Shown piece by piece: positions 850 to 7,052 of a stretch of DNA of 7,149 nucleotides (position 1 is its first letter; each line of letters begins with the position of its first letter). The stretch is taken from positions 1 to 7,149 of IMG/VR virus record IMGVR_UViG_3300002514_002723; one strand, written 5' to 3'. The notes beneath the pieces are model-generated. The model worked only from the letters and a program-made list of their open reading frames with translations, was not told the origin of the DNA and did no database searches. The translations under genes and the position numbers were made by a program.

Positions 850-2229
850 TTACCAAGTGCATCCAATCCGAGTGTACAGCTTCATTCGCTTCTTGGCGAG
901 TCCGCGCATCGAACCAATGTCATCAACTACATCAATGACGAGTGGTGGCTTCTTTTGTGGATGTGGGCGCATCACTCGTCCGATTCTCTGCTGAATACGA
1001 GCCAGGGCTTTGGTTGGAGTCGTCAGCACAACCGTGTCGAGAGATGGCAGGTCAAGGCCCTCATCAGCAAGCGTCGTGGCGCAGACCACCTGTATTTCTC
1101 TGTCCCTGGCTTTGTTTAAAGTCTCAGCCCGCTGCTTCTTTGTCATGCGTCCAACCAGTTGTTCTGCTGTGTACCCTCGAAATCTAAGCTCTTGAGCCAT
1201 TAAAGAGCAGTGGCTGACCCGGTCGGAAAGAACGAGCACTTGCCGACCCTCCTCGATTGCTCGAACAACTCGGCTGATAATGCGCTCATTTCGGTACATG
1301 TTGCCTACCATCTCATTGACCAGCTTTGGCCAGTCCATCGGACCTTTGGGGCCCTTCCAGTCCGTCATCAGCCACTCCACTCGGGGAGGTAGAACATGCC
1401 CGTCTTTCGCCAAGTCCGCGTTGGTGATCTCATAGACGGCGGGGCCAAGATGCCACCAGAGCATTGACGTAAGGCCGTCTTGTCTGCGAGGCGTAGCTGT
1501 AAGTCCCAGCCGGTACTTAGCTGGGATGGTCATCATGACTCGACTGAACATCTCGGCAGGGACATGGTGACACTCATCAACAATGCAAAGCCCAAACTGC
1601 TTGGCCCACTCGTACCGTTCAAGCCAAGACATTCGGTCAAGGGTTTGGAATGTGGCCACAACAACGCGGCCTGAGTCGTCTCGCTTGCCTCCCCCATAGA
1701 CGCTGGTGGTGCAGCCATCGAGGGTGGTTTCGAGCCGGTTTGTCCATTGTTCTGCAAGGTCGTTGGTGTGTACCAGGATGAGGGCCTTGGTCTCACAGGT
1801 TGTGATTCCAAAGATGCCGATTGTGGTCTTTCCAGCGCCACATGGCGCGACGATGACTCCTTCCTGGTCTTCTTTGATCCAAGAGCTAAGTGCCTCCTCT
1901 TGATATGGTCGAAGCTTGTAGCCACCAACAGGAACGAGCGGTTCTTTGACCAACGGGTAGGTGCGTTTGTCGATTATCTGGAGCCCGCTTCCATCGAGTT
2001 TGGCGTTTCGCGGGATGGCCAGCCCGCCTCCCCATGGGTGCTCAAACGGGATCTCTTGGCATGCGCTGACTCGCTCAGGGGGCATCTGTACCCACCTGCC
2101 ACGACTTCGTAGCCCTTGGGCCATTCTGTAGTCTGGGTTTGGAAGACTGTAGGATTCAGACAACTTTGCTGCGAGTTCACTCCCAGGCTGGAAGTAGTAC
2201 GCGCCTGCTCTCACACATAGATTACTCAT
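850..2229 (-). CDS. Superfamily 2 DExH-box helicase (XPB/Rad25/UvsW/ResIII-like), 459 aa
   Basis: Motifs: Q LRPYQ, I APCGAGKT, Ia LVHTNDLAEQW, Ib VATFQTL, II IVDECHH, III GLTATP, IV VLVLSDR, V TLADEGLDLP, VI QRIGRVMR. Start set at ATG 2229 (SD AGGTG, 6-nt spacing; ATGAGTAA overlap with the upstream stop). Confidence 0.93.
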   Translation of the reverse strand: MSNLCVRAGAYYFQPGSELAAKLSESYSLPNPDYRMAQGLRSRGRWVQMPPERVSACQEIPFEHPWGGGLAIPRNAKLDGSGLQIIDKRTYPLVKEPLVPVGGYKLRPYQEEALSSWIKEDQEGVIVAPCGAGKTTIGIFGITTCETKALILVHTNDLAEQWTNRLETTLDGCTTSVYGGGKRDDSGRVVVATFQTLDRMSWLERYEWAKQFGLCIVDECHHVPAEMFSRVMMTIPAKYRLGLTATPRRQDGLTSMLWWHLGPAVYEITNADLAKDGHVLPPRVEWLMTDWKGPKGPMDWPKLVNEMVGNMYRNERIISRVVRAIEEGRQVLVLSDRVSHCSLMAQELRFRGYTAEQLVGRMTKKQRAETLNKARDREIQVVCATTLADEGLDLPSLDTVVLTTPTKALARIQQRIGRVMRPHPQKKPPLVIDVVDDIGSMRGLAKKRMKLYTRIGCTW

Positions 2230-3553
2230 CGGTATCACCTGTTTTACTTAGTTCAATCACCTTAGTCTTCGTCCAAACATAAACTCTGTTCTCACCAATG
2301 CGCTTGCGGTCCTTCTTAAACCCAAGCTCTCGCAAGATCTCAGCCACACGAATCTCAGCATGTCGAGTCATGTGATTCTTCTCCAGCTTGAGGGCGTCTT
2401 CCATGAGGGTCCGCGTTGAGATCATCCCGTAGTAGTTCTGCGTATACTGGACGATCACGTCTCTCCAGGGGTCCTCCTGGCGGAAGATCTCGCTCTCCTC
2501 TTCGCGCTCCTTCTCCCACTCCTGCTCAAGCCACCATGTCGCGCCAGAGTTGTACTCAAGAATGGCCTCAGCCCAAAGCTGGTCCCGAAACTCCGCAACC
2601 CAATCGAGATCGATCTTCTTGACCTTGATGGGCCAGTACCTACGACTTCCCGTCCAGTCGTTCATGAACTGGCTGTCGTTGGTGGTTCCGGCAAACACGG
2701 TGTGCCGCTTAATGGTTACCGCTCTACGCCCATACGCTGGCCTGTAGGTGTCTTCCTGGGCACTGATGAAGGCTTTGGTTGCCGAGTTCGCTGAGCGCCG
2801 AACAGAGTCAAGCTCGGCTACCTCGTAGATCCAAGCACGCTGAATCTGCGTGTAGGCATTGGCTGAGCCAATATCGAGAGGTGTATCCGAAAAGAAGCTC
2901 TCAGTAGCCAGGGTCCTCAGCAGGCTGCTCTTGCGCGCGCCTTGGGGCCCAATCAGGATCAAGACACAGTCGGCCTTGCTGCCGGGCTTCATCGCGCGAG
3001 CAATCGCCTGAATCAACCACTTGTTGCCCATCATTCGGTTCAACTCGGTATCGTCACACCCGGTGGCCCGAATAAGCCAATCATCAGTTCGTTTGACCCC
3101 GTCCCACTTTACGCTACTGAGCCACTCTTGAAGTGGGTTGATGCCGTTCTCCTCGCCTATGAGCTTGGCGATTCCTGCAACCGTCGTGTCGGCAAACTTG
3201 ATGCCGTATGTTGCGTCAATCCATAGAGAGATCTTGGTGTCGTCGGTGTCCTTGTACTCATTGTCGTTCAAGTACAAGGCCCCATCGAACAGGTTCTCCC
3301 AGATGCTGGCCTTGTATCGACGGTCCAGGCTCAGAATCTTGTAGAGGTTGTTTCGGGACTGCTTGGGAACTCCAGTCAGGTTTCCTTGCTTGTCTCGATA
3401 CTGCTCAAGCTGCGGCAGCACAATCGGGTCTGGTTGGTCCCTACCCAACTGCTCTTCTTCGTCTTCATTCAGGTCTCCTTTGGCTTCAGCGTTCTTCAGC
3501 AAGCTCTGTAGTGATGTCTTCTCTCCGCGCAGCGTTCCGTCGATGTCAGGCAT
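2222..3553 (-). CDS. VapE/VirE-family P-loop ATPase (phage replicative helicase-like), 443 aa
   Basis: Walker A GPQGARKS, Walker B WIYEVAEL, family motifs KAFISAQEDTYRPAYGR, VFAGTTN, DWTGSRRYWPI, RDQLWAEA and DPW, then a C-terminal winged-helix-like segment. Directly follows the primase. Confidence 0.9.
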   Translation of the reverse strand: MPDIDGTLRGEKTSLQSLLKNAEAKGDLNEDEEEQLGRDQPDPIVLPQLEQYRDKQGNLTGVPKQSRNNLYKILSLDRRYKASIWENLFDGALYLNDNEYKDTDDTKISLWIDATYGIKFADTTVAGIAKLIGEENGINPLQEWLSSVKWDGVKRTDDWLIRATGCDDTELNRMMGNKWLIQAIARAMKPGSKADCVLILIGPQGARKSSLLRTLATESFFSDTPLDIGSANAYTQIQRAWIYEVAELDSVRRSANSATKAFISAQEDTYRPAYGRRAVTIKRHTVFAGTTNDSQFMNDWTGSRRYWPIKVKKIDLDWVAEFRDQLWAEAILEYNSGATWWLEQEWEKEREEESEIFRQEDPWRDVIVQYTQNYYGMISTRTLMEDALKLEKNHMTRHAEIRVAEILRELGFKKDRKRIGENRVYVWTKTKVIELSKTGDTDE

Positions 3554-3561
3554 TTTCTGCT

Positions 3562-4602
3562 TTAGGCCTCCAGCGGGACTCGGTAAACCTTGTGGTCGGG
3601 TAGGCCATCAGCAATCACTGTGGCGTATTCGTCTCCTCGGTCGTCAGGGTCGGTCGCAATATAGATTTTGGATGTTTTAGGGATTTGGATTTTTGGGATT
3701 GCTTTGAAGCCACCTGAAGCCGCAGCTACGATGGCCATCGTCATTTCTTCCGAATGCGCAGCACAGCACGCCCGGATAAAATCAGTGAGACCCTCACAGA
3801 TTAACAGTCCGGTTAGTCCAGGGACTACCTGGCCACGCATCATGCGAACCGCATCCGGGTTGGCCATGACCAACTCGCTGGCCTCATAGCGATATGGCCA
3901 TCGAGTCTTTGGGTTGATTTCCGGCACAGCAACGCTTCTTGCGTGGATGCTTGCGAACGTGCCATCAGATTCGTAGACTGGCGCGACTACCCGGTAGTTT
4001 GGAAGCCACTCCTTCCTCCACCACTCTGGCATTTGAACTCGGCCCGGTGGGGGCAGGACTCGGGCTGCTTTGCACTGGTCGAGCAGAAGGGGGGCAAACT
4101 TCCGGCGCAACAGCCACGTTGCCATGGGGTCTGCCCACTCTGGGTCGTCGTTCAGCGACTTTTCAAATGAGCAGGTGAGTCGCCATAGGTCATGTAGCTC
4201 TTCTTGTGGTGGTCGACGGTAGCCGTCGTCAACGACCCGCAGGAGGGCTTTCTTCTTTTCCAGTCCACTTGGTGCATGGGTTTCGCCTGGGCCTGGGCAT
4301 GCTCCTTGTTTTGAAAACCATGTTCGCACCTCAAGCTGTCTGCCTGATGGAAGCTCTCTAAAAGGTAACTCATGGAGCCGAAAGGCTGCGAGGTCGACCA
4401 CATCTCCTTTGATTCCGCAGCGGTGACACTTCCATGCCACCTGATCGAAGTTGACTCCTATTGGTCCTCGGTTGTCATCGGTTCCGCGAGTCTCTGAGTT
4501 GCATGCTGGGCATGGGCCAAGAGAGCGGCCCCGGCGTTTTTGTAAGCCGAGGGCTTTCGCTGCCTTGATGACTGGGAGGTCCTTCGCTTGCTGTATCCAC
4601 AT
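3562..4602 (-). CDS. DNA primase-like protein with N-terminal zinc finger and C-terminal TOPRIM domain (346 aa)
   Basis: GPCPAC...WKCHRCGIKGD zinc-binding module; TOPRIM motifs LLICEGLTD and IYIATDPDDRG. Start reassigned to ATG 4602 (SD AGGAG, 5-nt spacing). Confidence 0.85.
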   Translation of the reverse strand: MWIQQAKDLPVIKAAKALGLQKRRGRSLGPCPACNSETRGTDDNRGPIGVNFDQVAWKCHRCGIKGDVVDLAAFRLHELPFRELPSGRQLEVRTWFSKQGACPGPGETHAPSGLEKKKALLRVVDDGYRRPPQEELHDLWRLTCSFEKSLNDDPEWADPMATWLLRRKFAPLLLDQCKAARVLPPPGRVQMPEWWRKEWLPNYRVVAPVYESDGTFASIHARSVAVPEINPKTRWPYRYEASELVMANPDAVRMMRGQVVPGLTGLLICEGLTDFIRACCAAHSEEMTMAIVAAASGGFKAIPKIQIPKTSKIYIATDPDDRGDEYATVIADGLPDHKVYRVPLEA

Positions 4603-4606
4603 GTCT

Positions 4607-4752
4607 GCTCCTGGTCGTAAACCCACTTGGCCCCGATGAGGCCGCCCAGAGCGCGGAGCACTCTGAGCGACCTGACCAGGAGCCCTGTCCTCCCAAAGGG
4701 AGTGCCAAGGGGATCAACCTTGACGGGCTTTAGGTAGATACCGGATCTACCT
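4607..4752 (-). promoter_or_regulatory. Highly structured intergenic leader upstream of primase, with anti-SD helix
   Basis: Hand-folded stems: 4752-4745/4739-4732 (8 bp), 4729-4725/4685-4681 (5 bp), 4724-4718/4710-4704 (7 bp), 4702-4698/4694-4690 (5 bp), 4673-4658/4654-4639 (16 bp with 3 G:U), 4683-4674/4616-4607 (10 bp, covers SD). Confidence 0.65.
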
Positions 4753-4759
4753 GATTGGA

Positions 4760-5071
4760 TCAAGGTCCAAGGACAACGCCCTCGGTTTGATGGTCTTCGC
4801 ATGAGATTGAGTAGTAAAGCCGCATGTCCGGTGTAATGGTCAAGACCATCTTGAGCCCCGTGTTTGCGTAGACCTTCTTGGTGTACAACGCCAGAGAATC
4901 TACTGTTGGTGGGGGTCTCTTATGGTTCAACTGCTGCCAGAGATGCGAGTACCCGGTCTCAAGAATCTTCGCGGCTGGCCGGACCTTGCCTCCCAAGGCC
5001 CGGACCAAGCTTGCGAGAGCATCGTATGTGTCCACACGAAGCTCCGGTGGTTGTCGTCTTCCCTTTGCCAT
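4760..5071 (-). CDS. Putative HTH (XRE-like) DNA-binding protein (103 aa)
   Basis: Start reassigned to ATG 5071 (AAGGGG SD, 10 nt after the upstream stop). VRPAAKILETGYSHLWQQLNHKRPPPTVDSL fits an XRE-type HTH pattern, followed by a beta-rich C-terminus. Confidence 0.6.
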   Translation of the reverse strand: MAKGRRQPPELRVDTYDALASLVRALGGKVRPAAKILETGYSHLWQQLNHKRPPPTVDSLALYTKKVYANTGLKMVLTITPDMRLYYSISCEDHQTEGVVLGP

Positions 5072-5081
5072 CGGTTCCCCT

Positions 5082-5579
5082 TTACTTGGCTGCCTCTGTC
5101 TCTGAGGCGTTGTCTTCATCTTCATCAGCGACCAAGACCGGCTTGTGAACCGCCTCGCGCACCTGTGGCACGAAGGTGATGTTGCCGTTCTTCTGGATCT
5201 TAGGAAGCTTCTGGAAAAGCTCCTCGTCGATGAGGGCAAGCGCACCAGAGACCCCGCTCTCCTTCAGCAGGTTCGCATCAGCGTCCTTGCCAAGCTTGAT
5301 GGCTTCCTGAATAGAGTCCGCAATCATCCGTGCCGTCTGGGGCCCGGTGATGCCGGAACGCTTCAGGAAGATAGCCAGGGCAAGCTTCCAGGGAATGCGG
5401 CTTGTGCCCTTGGAGTCGAATGCCTCGCCTCGCTTGAGCAGGCCCTTGACTCGAATGAGCATATCGACCTCAGCCTGAGAGCCGTTAGCGATAGCCTTGC
5501 GGGCCGCTTCTGACTCCTTGGTCGAGATGGTCTTCATGATGGCAACGATTTCTTCTGGGGTAAGGTTGAGATCTTCCAT
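5082..5579 (-). CDS. Hypothetical protein with acidic C-terminal tail (165 aa)
   Basis: Strong SD AAGGAG, ATG start, GC-ending codon bias. Ends ADEDEDNASETEAAK. No family recognised. Confidence 0.8.
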   Translation of the reverse strand: MEDLNLTPEEIVAIMKTISTKESEAARKAIANGSQAEVDMLIRVKGLLKRGEAFDSKGTSRIPWKLALAIFLKRSGITGPQTARMIADSIQEAIKLGKDADANLLKESGVSGALALIDEELFQKLPKIQKNGNITFVPQVREAVHKPVLVADEDEDNASETEAAK

Positions 5580-5679
5580 GGTATCGCTCTCCTTTGGTTG
5601 GTTGAGGCATCTATGTCACCGCCCACATGCCTCCCTGCTGGGCCCTAAGGGGTAACAGGAACCCCCCGGTGGTTTTGAA

Positions 5680-5708
5680 ATCTTAACTGGTCTGCCCAAC
5701 CAGTGCAA
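5680..5708 (-). promoter_or_regulatory. Sigma70-type promoter for the replication operon, with overlapping inverted repeat
   Basis: TTGCAC (5708-5703), 17 nt, TAAGAT (5685-5680), with an AT-rich tract upstream. ACTGGT-N7-ACCAGT (5686-5704) spans the spacer and part of the -35. Confidence 0.6.
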
Positions 5709-6256: not shown

Positions 6257-6721
6257 TTACCCGGCAATAGCGAGTGCTGGGCGTTCTCGGTAGATGTGGT
6301 ACACGGGGCGCGTGACATCCAGCATGGAGCGGATGCACGCCAGTTGAACCAGTTGCCCCAGCTTCATGATGCTGAGCGGAATGCTCTTCCACAGCAGCGC
6401 CCCTGATATGGGCTTTCGGTCTTTCCGTGGGCGTGCCGCAAAGCTTACGGTGACCGTCTTGGAGTCCAGGCCGCTCTGGCACGGAAATGGTTGGCGGATC
6501 TCAATCCTGGCCCAGGACGGGATGTCGTATGTCTTGAGCACTTCACGAAGTGAGGGCTCCAGATCAGAGAGCCCAAGCGCCCTCCGCATCTCGTTTACTG
6601 GGGTCACTCTCCATCCAAGCTTGTAGCTGAACTCCAGCCTTCGCTCCGTGATGCCGGTGAACTCAATGTAGTGTTTGAAGTCCCGGCCTCCGGTGTATTT
6701 GGCAATCATCTCCGTCTCCAT
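6257..6721 (-). CDS. Hypothetical protein (150-154 aa)
   Basis: Long ORF co-oriented with its neighbours and filling the gap. Start is ATG 6721 or ATG 6709 (the latter has GGAG 6 nt upstream). No motif recognised. Confidence 0.7.
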   Translation of the reverse strand: METEMIAKYTGGRDFKHYIEFTGITERRLEFSYKLGWRVTPVNEMRRALGLSDLEPSLREVLKTYDIPSWARIEIRQPFPCQSGLDSKTVTVSFAARPRKDRKPISGALLWKSIPLSIMKLGQLVQLACIRSMLDVTRPVYHIYRERPALAIAG

Positions 6722-6842: not shown

Positions 6843-6859
6843 GCCGACCCTGGGAGGAA

Positions 6860-6897
6860 CGGGAAGGGTCCAGGGCCCCATCCCTTAACCCTTCCCG
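6860..6897 (-). other. Strong stem-loop spanning the stop codon of the zinc-finger ORF
   Basis: CGGGAAGGGT (6860-6869) and ACCCTTCCCG (6888-6897) form a perfect 10-bp inverted repeat, extendable inward by AGGG/CCCU. Followed only by UUCCU, so weak as an intrinsic terminator. Confidence 0.55.
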
Positions 6898-7052
6898 CTA
6901 CATCCCCTCAGGTGGTTCTGTGCCCTTTTGAGGCTGCGATACGGGCCGACCCTGGCCTTGCAGCATCTGCAACGGACATAGAACAGCGGCCTGAGTCCCG
7001 CTGGGTTTGCGATGAAGATGCCCTTGTTGGGCTGCTTGAGGGGGGTGGTCAT
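6885..7052 (-). CDS. Small basic C2HC zinc-finger protein (55 aa), not in the ORF track
   Basis: MTTPLKQPNKGIFIANPAGLRPLFYVRCRCCKARVGPYRSLKRAQNHLRGCSGKG* contains C-x2-C-x15-H-x3-C. ATG overlaps the upstream stop (TGATG); SD-like GGGGGTGA. Confidence 0.65.
   Translation of the reverse strand: MTTPLKQPNKGIFIANPAGLRPLFYVRCRCCKARVGPYRSLKRAQNHLRGCSGKG

Follow-up and report, generated by a model that had tools for sequence, protein, structure and literature searches.

A conserved, structured primase leader in uncultured marine phages with two predicted folds that hide or expose the ribosome-binding site

Translation of bacterial and phage genes is often controlled by structured RNA in the 5' leader, where base-pairing decides whether the Shine-Dalgarno (SD) sequence is accessible. 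In the expression platforms of translational riboswitches, such as thiM TPP or SAM-II, SD, anti-SD and anti-anti-SD strands are arranged so that two mutually exclusive helices compete for one strand. Translational operators, including those of T4 gp43, gp32 and RegA, the MS2 coat-protein hairpin and the leaders of ribosomal-protein genes, are instead bound by proteins, and a hairpin with a conserved loop and a variable stem is the usual appearance of such a site. In the leader of the MS2/Qbeta maturation-protein gene, a cloverleaf makes a long-distance pairing with the SD and translation occurs only before the leader reaches its final fold. RNA thermometers of the ROSE and fourU types hold the SD in a hairpin, whereas stable hairpins are used by primases in single-strand initiation (ssi) signals and the G4-type complementary-strand origin. 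Structured cis-regulatory RNAs of phages are nevertheless poorly catalogued, and almost nothing is known about how uncultured marine phages dose their replication proteins. Here we describe a conserved leader upstream of a phage primase gene, which resembles several of these systems but has no counterpart in Rfam.

The window analysed here is the whole 7,149-nucleotide stretch of IMG/VR contig IMGVR_UViG_3300002514_002723, and a 14-kb metagenome contig (L083) contains the primase match at 100% identity. All genes of interest lie on the minus strand (Table 1), and in a 64-kb relative the same module is followed by YqaJ exonuclease and RecT genes and sits in a long same-strand operon. An earlier note, made from the sequence alone, described the 157-nt spacer before the primase gene as an almost fully folded leader in which a perfect 10-bp helix sequesters the SD, with a 16-bp hairpin stacked directly inside it and a junction upstream that partly competes with it. 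Each of these elements was found at the stated coordinates on the minus strand, and the observation is confirmed. A repeat finder reported the same 10-nt inverted repeat. RNAfold of positions 4765-4590 on the minus strand gave -83.4 kcal/mol against a shuffled average of -63.8 (sd 4.6; z = -4.27), and none of 200 shuffles folded as well, while the plus strand gave -70.9 kcal/mol (z = -2.82); comparison with shuffled controls had been set beforehand as a test of the claim. The minus-strand MFE structure contains every helix that the note described, together with one more hairpin (P1) 5' of the junction. Related loci are designated below by L-numbers, L004 being the window's closest relative.

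Table 1. Positions in the window of the genes, predicted helices and pairing strands, with the observations attached to each
Positions	Strand	Feature	Observations
4760-5071	minus	Upstream gene, 103 aa; small XRE/Cro-like HTH protein with a 3-stranded beta C-terminus	Stop codon UGA at 4762-4760, the leader beginning right after it; syntenic homologues in nearly all related loci; gene calls of 101-103 aa in L216, L219, L220 and L221; AlphaFold2 pLDDT 81 with weak HTH fold matches; weak Pfam HTH hits
4603-4759	minus	Spacer (leader), 157 nt
4732-4752	minus	P1 hairpin, 4752-4745 with 4739-4732: AGGUAGAU, loop CCGGU, AUCUACCU	In the MFE structure; in L004 the stem is kept and the loop changed; relatives have a hairpin at the same place with unrelated stem sequences; in most relatives the upstream stop codon lies in its 5' arm
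4725-4730	minus	AAGCCC strand (AGCCC at 4729-4725)	Pairs with GGGCU (4685-4681) in the SD-hidden fold or with GGGUUU (4624-4619) in the SD-free fold; covariation of GCCC:GGGC to GCCU:AGGC (L216) and ACCC:GGGU (L219)
4704-4724	minus	P2 hairpin, 4724-4718 with 4710-4704: GUCAAGG, loop UUGAUCC (4717-4711), CCUUGGC	Stem covaries; UGAUC invariant in all 34 distinct P2 sequences
4690-4702	minus	P3 hairpin, 4702-4698 with 4694-4690: CUCCC, loop UUU, GGGAG	Present only in the 'long' subfamily to which the window belongs; relatives have UUCG or GNRA loops (GUGA, GCAA, GUAA, GAGA) with covarying stems
4674-4685	minus	GGGCU (4685-4681) plus the anti-SD strand GCUCCUGGUC (4683-4674)	The two share 4683-4681; the anti-SD strand covaries with both the SD strand and the SD mimic
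4639-4673	minus	P4 hairpin, 16 bp, 4673-4658 with 4654-4639, loop UCC	Directly inside the SD helix; only non-Watson-Crick pairs are three U:G; against L004, one G:C to A:U, two U:G to C:G and one G:C to G:U change; across the family 96.7% of cells paired and all 11 model pairs changed on both sides
4629-4637	minus	SD mimic, AUCGGGGCC	Alternative partner of the anti-SD strand, extending P4 and freeing the SD; the window's C-G becomes U-A in L216, and U:G/U-A becomes C-G in L054, L059 and L123
4619-4624	minus	GGGUUU	Alternative partner of AAGCCC, closing a four-way junction in the SD-free fold; L004, L221 and L007 have GGGCU here, and L123, L050 and L059 use AUCGC:GCGAU or AACGC:GCGUU; weaker support (72% of cells paired)
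4607-4616	minus	SD strand, GACCAGGAGC	AGGAG at 4612-4608, 5 nt before the AUG; separated from P4 by a 22-nt linker; perfect complement of the anti-SD strand, with which it covaries
3562-4602	minus	Primase gene, 346 aa; zinc-finger region plus Toprim	AUG at 4602-4600; Pfam Toprim_2/Toprim below cut-off; PHROG 47 'DNA primase' at 4e-11; N-terminus M-W-I conserved in 27 aligned homologues
2222-3553	minus	VapE-like ATPase/helicase gene	PF05272 at 4.6e-76 and PHROG 1313; starts 8 nt after the primase stop, so translational coupling is likely (inference)
850-2238	minus	SF2 (ResIII/DEAD) helicase gene	PF04851 and PF00271, and PHROG 16; overlaps the VapE gene by 17 nt

No cultured relative was found. 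Megablast of the window and blastn of the leader against 50,697 phage records returned nothing, as did tblastn with the primase, and only the VapE domain found distant phage hits; a search of a genome collection gave one unrelated MAG contig without the motif. However, a protein-profile search found 80 IMG/VR loci and 77 metagenome loci with primase homologues, to which three further relatives at 93%, 55% and 51% protein identity were added by exact look-up. The leader is recognisable directly upstream of primases only 38-55% identical to that of the window, and occurs in about 70 IMG/VR contigs plus further metagenome contigs, giving 57 distinct leader sequences. In most loci the 100-175 nt before the primase start follow the same plan: P1, usually containing the upstream stop codon; A-rich bases and GCCC; P2 with a (C/U)UGAUC loop; an optional P3; GGGCU fused to a pyrimidine-rich anti-SD; the long hairpin P4; a short purine-rich linker; and the SD. 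A covariance model built from 36 leaders hits once per locus, always ending at the primase start, including in loci of 10-15 kb, and the window scores 71 bits (E = 3e-18). Primase homologues with spacers of only 8-37 nt lack the element entirely. A pattern scan of IMG/VR that was independent of the primase protein returned true instances that were all primase leaders, while odd-length matches were due to chance. Among the 4227 families of Rfam 15, which include self-cleaving ribozymes, cmscan of the window at E<=10 gave nothing in 4590-4800, and cmscan of eight related loci at E<=1 gave only tRNAs elsewhere. ARAGORN found no tRNA or tmRNA genes in the window, and full-text literature searches found no description of a primase-associated RNA motif.

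The helices are supported by covariation. In a structure-naive MAFFT alignment (A3) scored against a hand-drawn structure, 84.3% of cells are paired compared to 76.8% in shuffles, 22 of 37 pairs are changed on both sides, none of 500 shuffles reaches the observed values, and sliding the partners by 1-3 columns drops pairing to 33-54% (at or below 53.7%). The model-guided alignment of 57 distinct leaders gives 87.2%, with 33 of 37 pairs changed on both sides and again 0 of 500 shuffles, although the sequences are phylogenetically related, such that shuffle counts are not probabilities, and alignment A4 was fitted to the model. RNAalifold predicted P2, P4 and the SD helix independently. It also proposed an outer helix between CUAC(A) of P1 and (U)GUGG at the start codon, where there is no variation. 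Similarly, pairing of the P2 loop with codons 2-3 (UGGAU) is possible and appears in one MFE structure, but both sides are invariant, leaving no covariation to consider, and loops ending in A lose a pair.

Several features indicate that selection acts on RNA of the coding strand. The earlier note had argued for the minus-strand fold from the three U:G wobbles, which would be A:C mismatches on the plus strand, and this argument holds across the family: in P4, G:U occurs 35 times and A:C 0 times, compared to 26 against 10 in P2 and 19 against 8 in P2a. P3 loops in relatives are of the GNRA or UUCG type, L004 having CUCC-UUCG-GGAG, and several P1 loops are UUCG or CUCG. In 24 of 28 homologous leaders the coding strand has the more negative z-score, and one strand of the longest-range helix is the ribosome-binding site itself.

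The anti-SD and SD strands change together, from GCUCCUGGUC with GACCAGGAGC in the window to CUCCUGAC with GUCAGGAG in the majority of leaders, CUUCCGGUG with CACCGGGAG in L054, GCUCCCAC with GUGGGAGC in L078 and GCUCCCCA with UGGGGAGC in L134, so that the helix is kept across the leader variants, the L060-63 variant described below excepted. The covarying positions include bases 5' of the SD core that ribosome binding does not constrain. The duplex energy with the own partner is -17.5 kcal/mol, against -13.2 for partners from other sequence types, and is better in every type. In a MAFFT alignment of the long subfamily 93.4% of cells in this helix are paired and three pairs are changed on both sides (UA to CG, AU to GC/CG, CG to UA/GC).

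When 31 leaders were folded one by one, two answers recurred. In 12 the anti-SD strand pairs with the SD, whereas in 16, including L004, it pairs with the purine-rich linker just after P4, which extends P4 and leaves the SD free. This linker is an SD mimic, being UCGGG or UCAGG..CCC in most leaders, UUAGGAGCCC in L034, AACCGGGAGCC in L054 and AUCCGGGGGCC in L123. In a MAFFT alignment (A6) of 13 long leaders the alternative helix is 92.2% paired, with three pairs changed on both sides. The most telling case is the C-G pair of the window that is U-A in L216, because the SD itself stays GGAG, its base opposite the same anti-SD position remaining G and tolerating a G:U. In simple duplex-swap tests, however, the alternative helix is no better than swapped partners in the window group (-12.7 against -12.2) and the L078 group, and in the window lineage its support comes from a few compensatory events among 13 related sequences. 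The note's term 'switch-like' is right, but the competition it named, a 3-nt overlap of GGGCU with the anti-SD strand, is only a minor part; the main alternative is pairing of the anti-SD strand with the mimic, together with a different closing helix.

The two folds are predicted to be nearly equal in energy. The SD-free fold is the MFE for 4755-4595, 4731-4600 and 4800-4560, and the SD-hidden fold for 4765-4588 and 4690-4600; hence, the outcome changes with a few flanking bases, the two folds lie within the error of the energy model, and 'bistable' rests on a model with errors of several kcal/mol. In growing transcripts the mimic helix is predicted to reach a probability of 0.96-0.99 before the SD strand is made, and it still dominates for 3' ends just past the SD strand, apart from one tested end (4580). 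A kinetic bias towards an initially translatable RNA is an inference from these values.

With regard to a possible trigger, UGAUC is invariant in all 34 distinct P2 hairpins while their stems vary freely. The L060-63 variant has lost the anti-SD strand, P4 and the mimic, yet keeps P2 and P3, and there GCCC is predicted to pair directly with the G-run of the SD. This suggests that the P2 domain and its closing helix are the sensing part, and closing that helix would favour SD sequestration because the closing strand GGGCU is contiguous with the anti-SD strand and the mimic also needs it. A scan of 1.27 Mb of related loci for UGAUC-loop hairpins gave 208 hits against about 10 in shuffled loci, nearly all at the leader; the remainder were scattered and about as numerous as in shuffled loci, so no second hairpin that would suggest a regulon was found.

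The interpretation offered in the note, a cis-regulatory RNA that gates translation of the primase by sequestering its ribosome-binding site, is supported by this comparative evidence. We propose, with reasonable though not complete confidence, that the spacer is the 5' leader of the primase mRNA, probably co-transcribed with the small HTH gene upstream, and that it works as a two-state translational switch in a clade of uncultured marine phages. In the SD-hidden fold, AGCCC would pair with GGGCU to close the junction holding P2 and P3 while the anti-SD strand pairs with the SD strand, so that 30S subunits cannot bind. In the SD-free fold, pairing of the anti-SD strand with the mimic and of AAGCCC with GGGUUU would together form a closed four-way junction and leave AGGAG single-stranded. 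Our analyses establish that the structure exists and is conserved, that every helix covaries, including both mutually exclusive ones, that selection acts on the coding strand, and that there is one copy per locus, always abutting the primase start. By contrast, it is inferred from sequence alone that the leader belongs to the primase mRNA, a transcription start within it not being excluded; that the balance between the folds sets primase translation and, through close or overlapping gene junctions, probably also affects the VapE ATPase and the helicase; that the SD-free fold forms first during transcription; and that a trans-acting factor shifts the balance. We think such a factor is most likely a protein that recognises the UGAUC loop of P2 and its closing helix, stabilising the AGCCC:GGGCU closure and so favouring the SD-hidden fold, for example as negative feedback on replication proteins, although the candidates (the primase, or the adjacent HTH protein) are guesses, and a small ligand, ribosome docking or no trigger at all remain possible. 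No promoter-like site on either strand and no terminator-like site on the coding strand were found between the upstream gene and the primase gene.

A more speculative possibility, which we regard as unlikely on present evidence, is that the leader represents a new class of sensing RNA, in which the four-way-junction fold (P2 with its invariant loop, the GNRA-capped P3 and the extended P4) is a true aptamer. It would bind a small molecule, or a replication protein such as the primase itself, and set translation of a phage replication module, which would be the first riboswitch-like control of a phage primase. In a variant of this idea, the loop might be a docking or standby site that lets 30S subunits open the SD helix, as UGAUC(C) is the exact complement of the GAUCA stretch (UGAUCC of GGAUCA) that precedes the anti-SD in the 16S rRNA 3' tail.

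Among the rival explanations, the one that survives best, while still improbable, is a static structure that keeps the SD mostly base-paired so that primase is translated at a fixed low level, or that protects the mRNA from nucleases, the complementarity of the mimic being a by-product of purine-rich sequence. The SD helix is indeed the most consistently covarying long-range helix, the mimic helix is weak by the swap test in two lineages, and no trigger has been identified. However, the mimic changes in step with the anti-SD strand where the SD cannot change (the window against L216; L054, L123 and L059), the mimic helix is the MFE in about half of the leaders, and an invariant loop 100 nt from the SD is not needed for a static clamp.

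The note's alternative, a folded single-stranded DNA element acting as a priming or origin signal for the neighbouring primase, is not supported and we consider it very unlikely. The position next to a primase gene and the stable hairpins with a conserved loop would suit it, but the ribosome-binding site covaries with its partner, G:U pairs are tolerated in P4 where A:C pairs are not, GNRA and UUCG tetraloops are RNA motifs, no iterons, origin-like repeats or AT-rich stretch are present (GC is about 0.57-0.59), and primase homologues with short spacers lack the element. A transcription attenuator is equally doubtful. In the majority subfamily P4 is followed by UCUUUC or UUUU, but this U-rich tail is not conserved across subfamilies; in the window P4 is followed by CAUCGGGG, no terminator-like site was found on the minus strand in 4300-5700, and the covarying partner of the anti-SD strand is the SD. 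A free-standing small RNA or ribozyme would be consistent with a compact, multi-helical fold with tetraloops, but is similarly unlikely given the absence of any Rfam, tRNA or tmRNA match, the constant abutment to and inclusion of the primase SD, and the lack of a bracketing promoter or terminator. A leader peptide was rejected, since the AUG that follows a GAGGUG in some relatives (the L054 group) differs in frame between L054 and L059/L123, is followed by a stop after 4 codons in L050, and is absent from the window. Temperature, one of the triggers suggested in the note, looks unlikely, because the helix has 10 perfect pairs, 7 of them G-C, the predicted share of the SD-hidden fold stays at 0.51-0.81 from 4 to 37 C with no melting trend, and the samples are marine.

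The leader is a well-supported new RNA family and offers an unusually clear comparative signature of two alternative folds, with an anti-SD strand, an SD mimic and the SD all changing in step. At about 125-160 nt it is short enough for direct tests with probing, toeprinting and reporter fusions, and its addition to RNA family databases would improve annotation of viral metagenomes. If a ligand or protein partner were found, it would give a new regulatory part and a handle on replication control in an abundant, uncultured phage group.

Compared with RNA thermometers, the leader likewise sequesters the SD, but the helix is long, perfect and GC-rich, with no predicted temperature dependence. It shares with ssi signals and the G4-type origin only stable hairpins next to or used by a primase, and the evidence here points to RNA. 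Like the protein-bound operators, it would control a phage replication gene at translation through a structured RNA near the ribosome-binding site, and P2 has the conserved loop and freely covarying stem of a protein site, but this hairpin lies about 100 nt upstream of the SD and would act through a refolding relay rather than by direct occlusion, and the binding protein is hypothetical. As in the MS2/Qbeta maturation-protein leader, a multi-branched leader pairs the SD with an upstream complement in its equilibrium fold, and predicted co-transcriptional folding first gives an SD-free state; here, however, there is no sequence or Rfam relationship, the gene is internal to an operon of a DNA phage, and a dedicated SD mimic would stabilise the open state. 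As in translational riboswitches, two mutually exclusive helices, both showing compensatory change, compete for one strand, one of them sequestering the SD, and a structured 5' domain whose closing helix shares bases with the switching strand could couple binding to the choice of fold; no known aptamer matches, and the candidate sensor is a simple hairpin with an invariant loop plus a junction rather than a recognised ligand pocket. The kind of mechanism is thus an established one, but the family, its three-strand design and its invariant loop are new.

The gene immediately upstream of the leader encodes a 103-aa protein predicted to comprise four helices, forming an XRE/Cro-like HTH, and a small three-stranded sheet. 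It is syntenic in nearly all related loci, including those that lack the leader, and could be a transcription regulator or an origin-binding protein; it is also one candidate partner for the leader. Downstream, the gene junctions are tight, since the VapE gene starts 8 nt after the primase stop codon and the helicase start overlaps the VapE end by 17 nt, and control of primase translation could therefore spread to the whole module by translational coupling. In two lineages of related phages, represented by loci L078 and L134, a tRNA gene (Rfam tRNA, 64–67 bits) lies about 600 nt upstream of the primase leader, whereas the window has none.

Coordinates of features in and around the leader, in the window and in related loci
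Location	Strand	Feature
window 4760-5071	-	Upstream HTH gene
window 4775-4788 and 4544-4557		Complementary pair bracketing the leader
window 4756-4763 with 4592-4599	-	Predicted pairing of the first primase codons with a segment next to P1
window 4711-4717	-	P2 loop
window 3553-3564		Primase–VapE junction
window 2222-2238		VapE–helicase junction
window 6547-6567 (L003:~530-550)	-	Second hairpin with a UGAUC loop
window 6843-6916		GC-rich hairpin
L078:1819-1891		tRNA gene
L134:821-893		tRNA gene
L006, L009-L011, L046, L065, L122	opposite to the primase gene	Recurrent hairpin

A 14-nt, 86% complementary pair brackets the whole leader, with one arm in the end of the upstream gene and the other in primase codons 16–20. 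In L004, a close relative of the window, two synonymous C-to-T changes turn G-C pairs into G:U pairs rather than breaking them, although with only two sequences this may be chance. Folding programs also repeatedly pair the first codons of the primase gene (AUG-UGG-AUx) with a segment next to the P1 hairpin, which in the window and L004 includes the upstream stop codon; in relatives, they pair the 3' arm of P1, CUAC(A), with (U)GUGG at the start codon. Both sides are invariant, however, and so this pairing is beyond the reach of covariation.

The GC-rich hairpin at 6843-6916 gives weak, sub-threshold matches on both strands to unrelated Rfam hairpin families (mir-328, mir-4850 and BLV_package), and is probably just a strong inverted repeat near the contig end. 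The second hairpin with a UGAUC loop (GGGCUC, loop UCUGAUCUG, GAGCCC) lies inside an ORF on the same strand; the hairpin scan did not find it in L004, and scattered hits of this kind are about as frequent in shuffled loci, so it is probably fortuitous. A recurrent hairpin (CUGUUCG, loop CUGAUCG, ACGAACAG, with variants), conserved in about 16 loci, falls by our coordinate estimate inside the VapE-like gene, and is probably a by-product of coding conservation.

The P2 hairpin loop contains GATC. In the window and in all relatives the invariant UGAUC(C) is the exact complement of GAUCA/GGAUCA, which lies just 5' of the anti-SD in the 16S rRNA 3' tail, and in the majority subfamily the 5' arm plus the loop (GGGGAUUGAUCC) resembles an extended SD.
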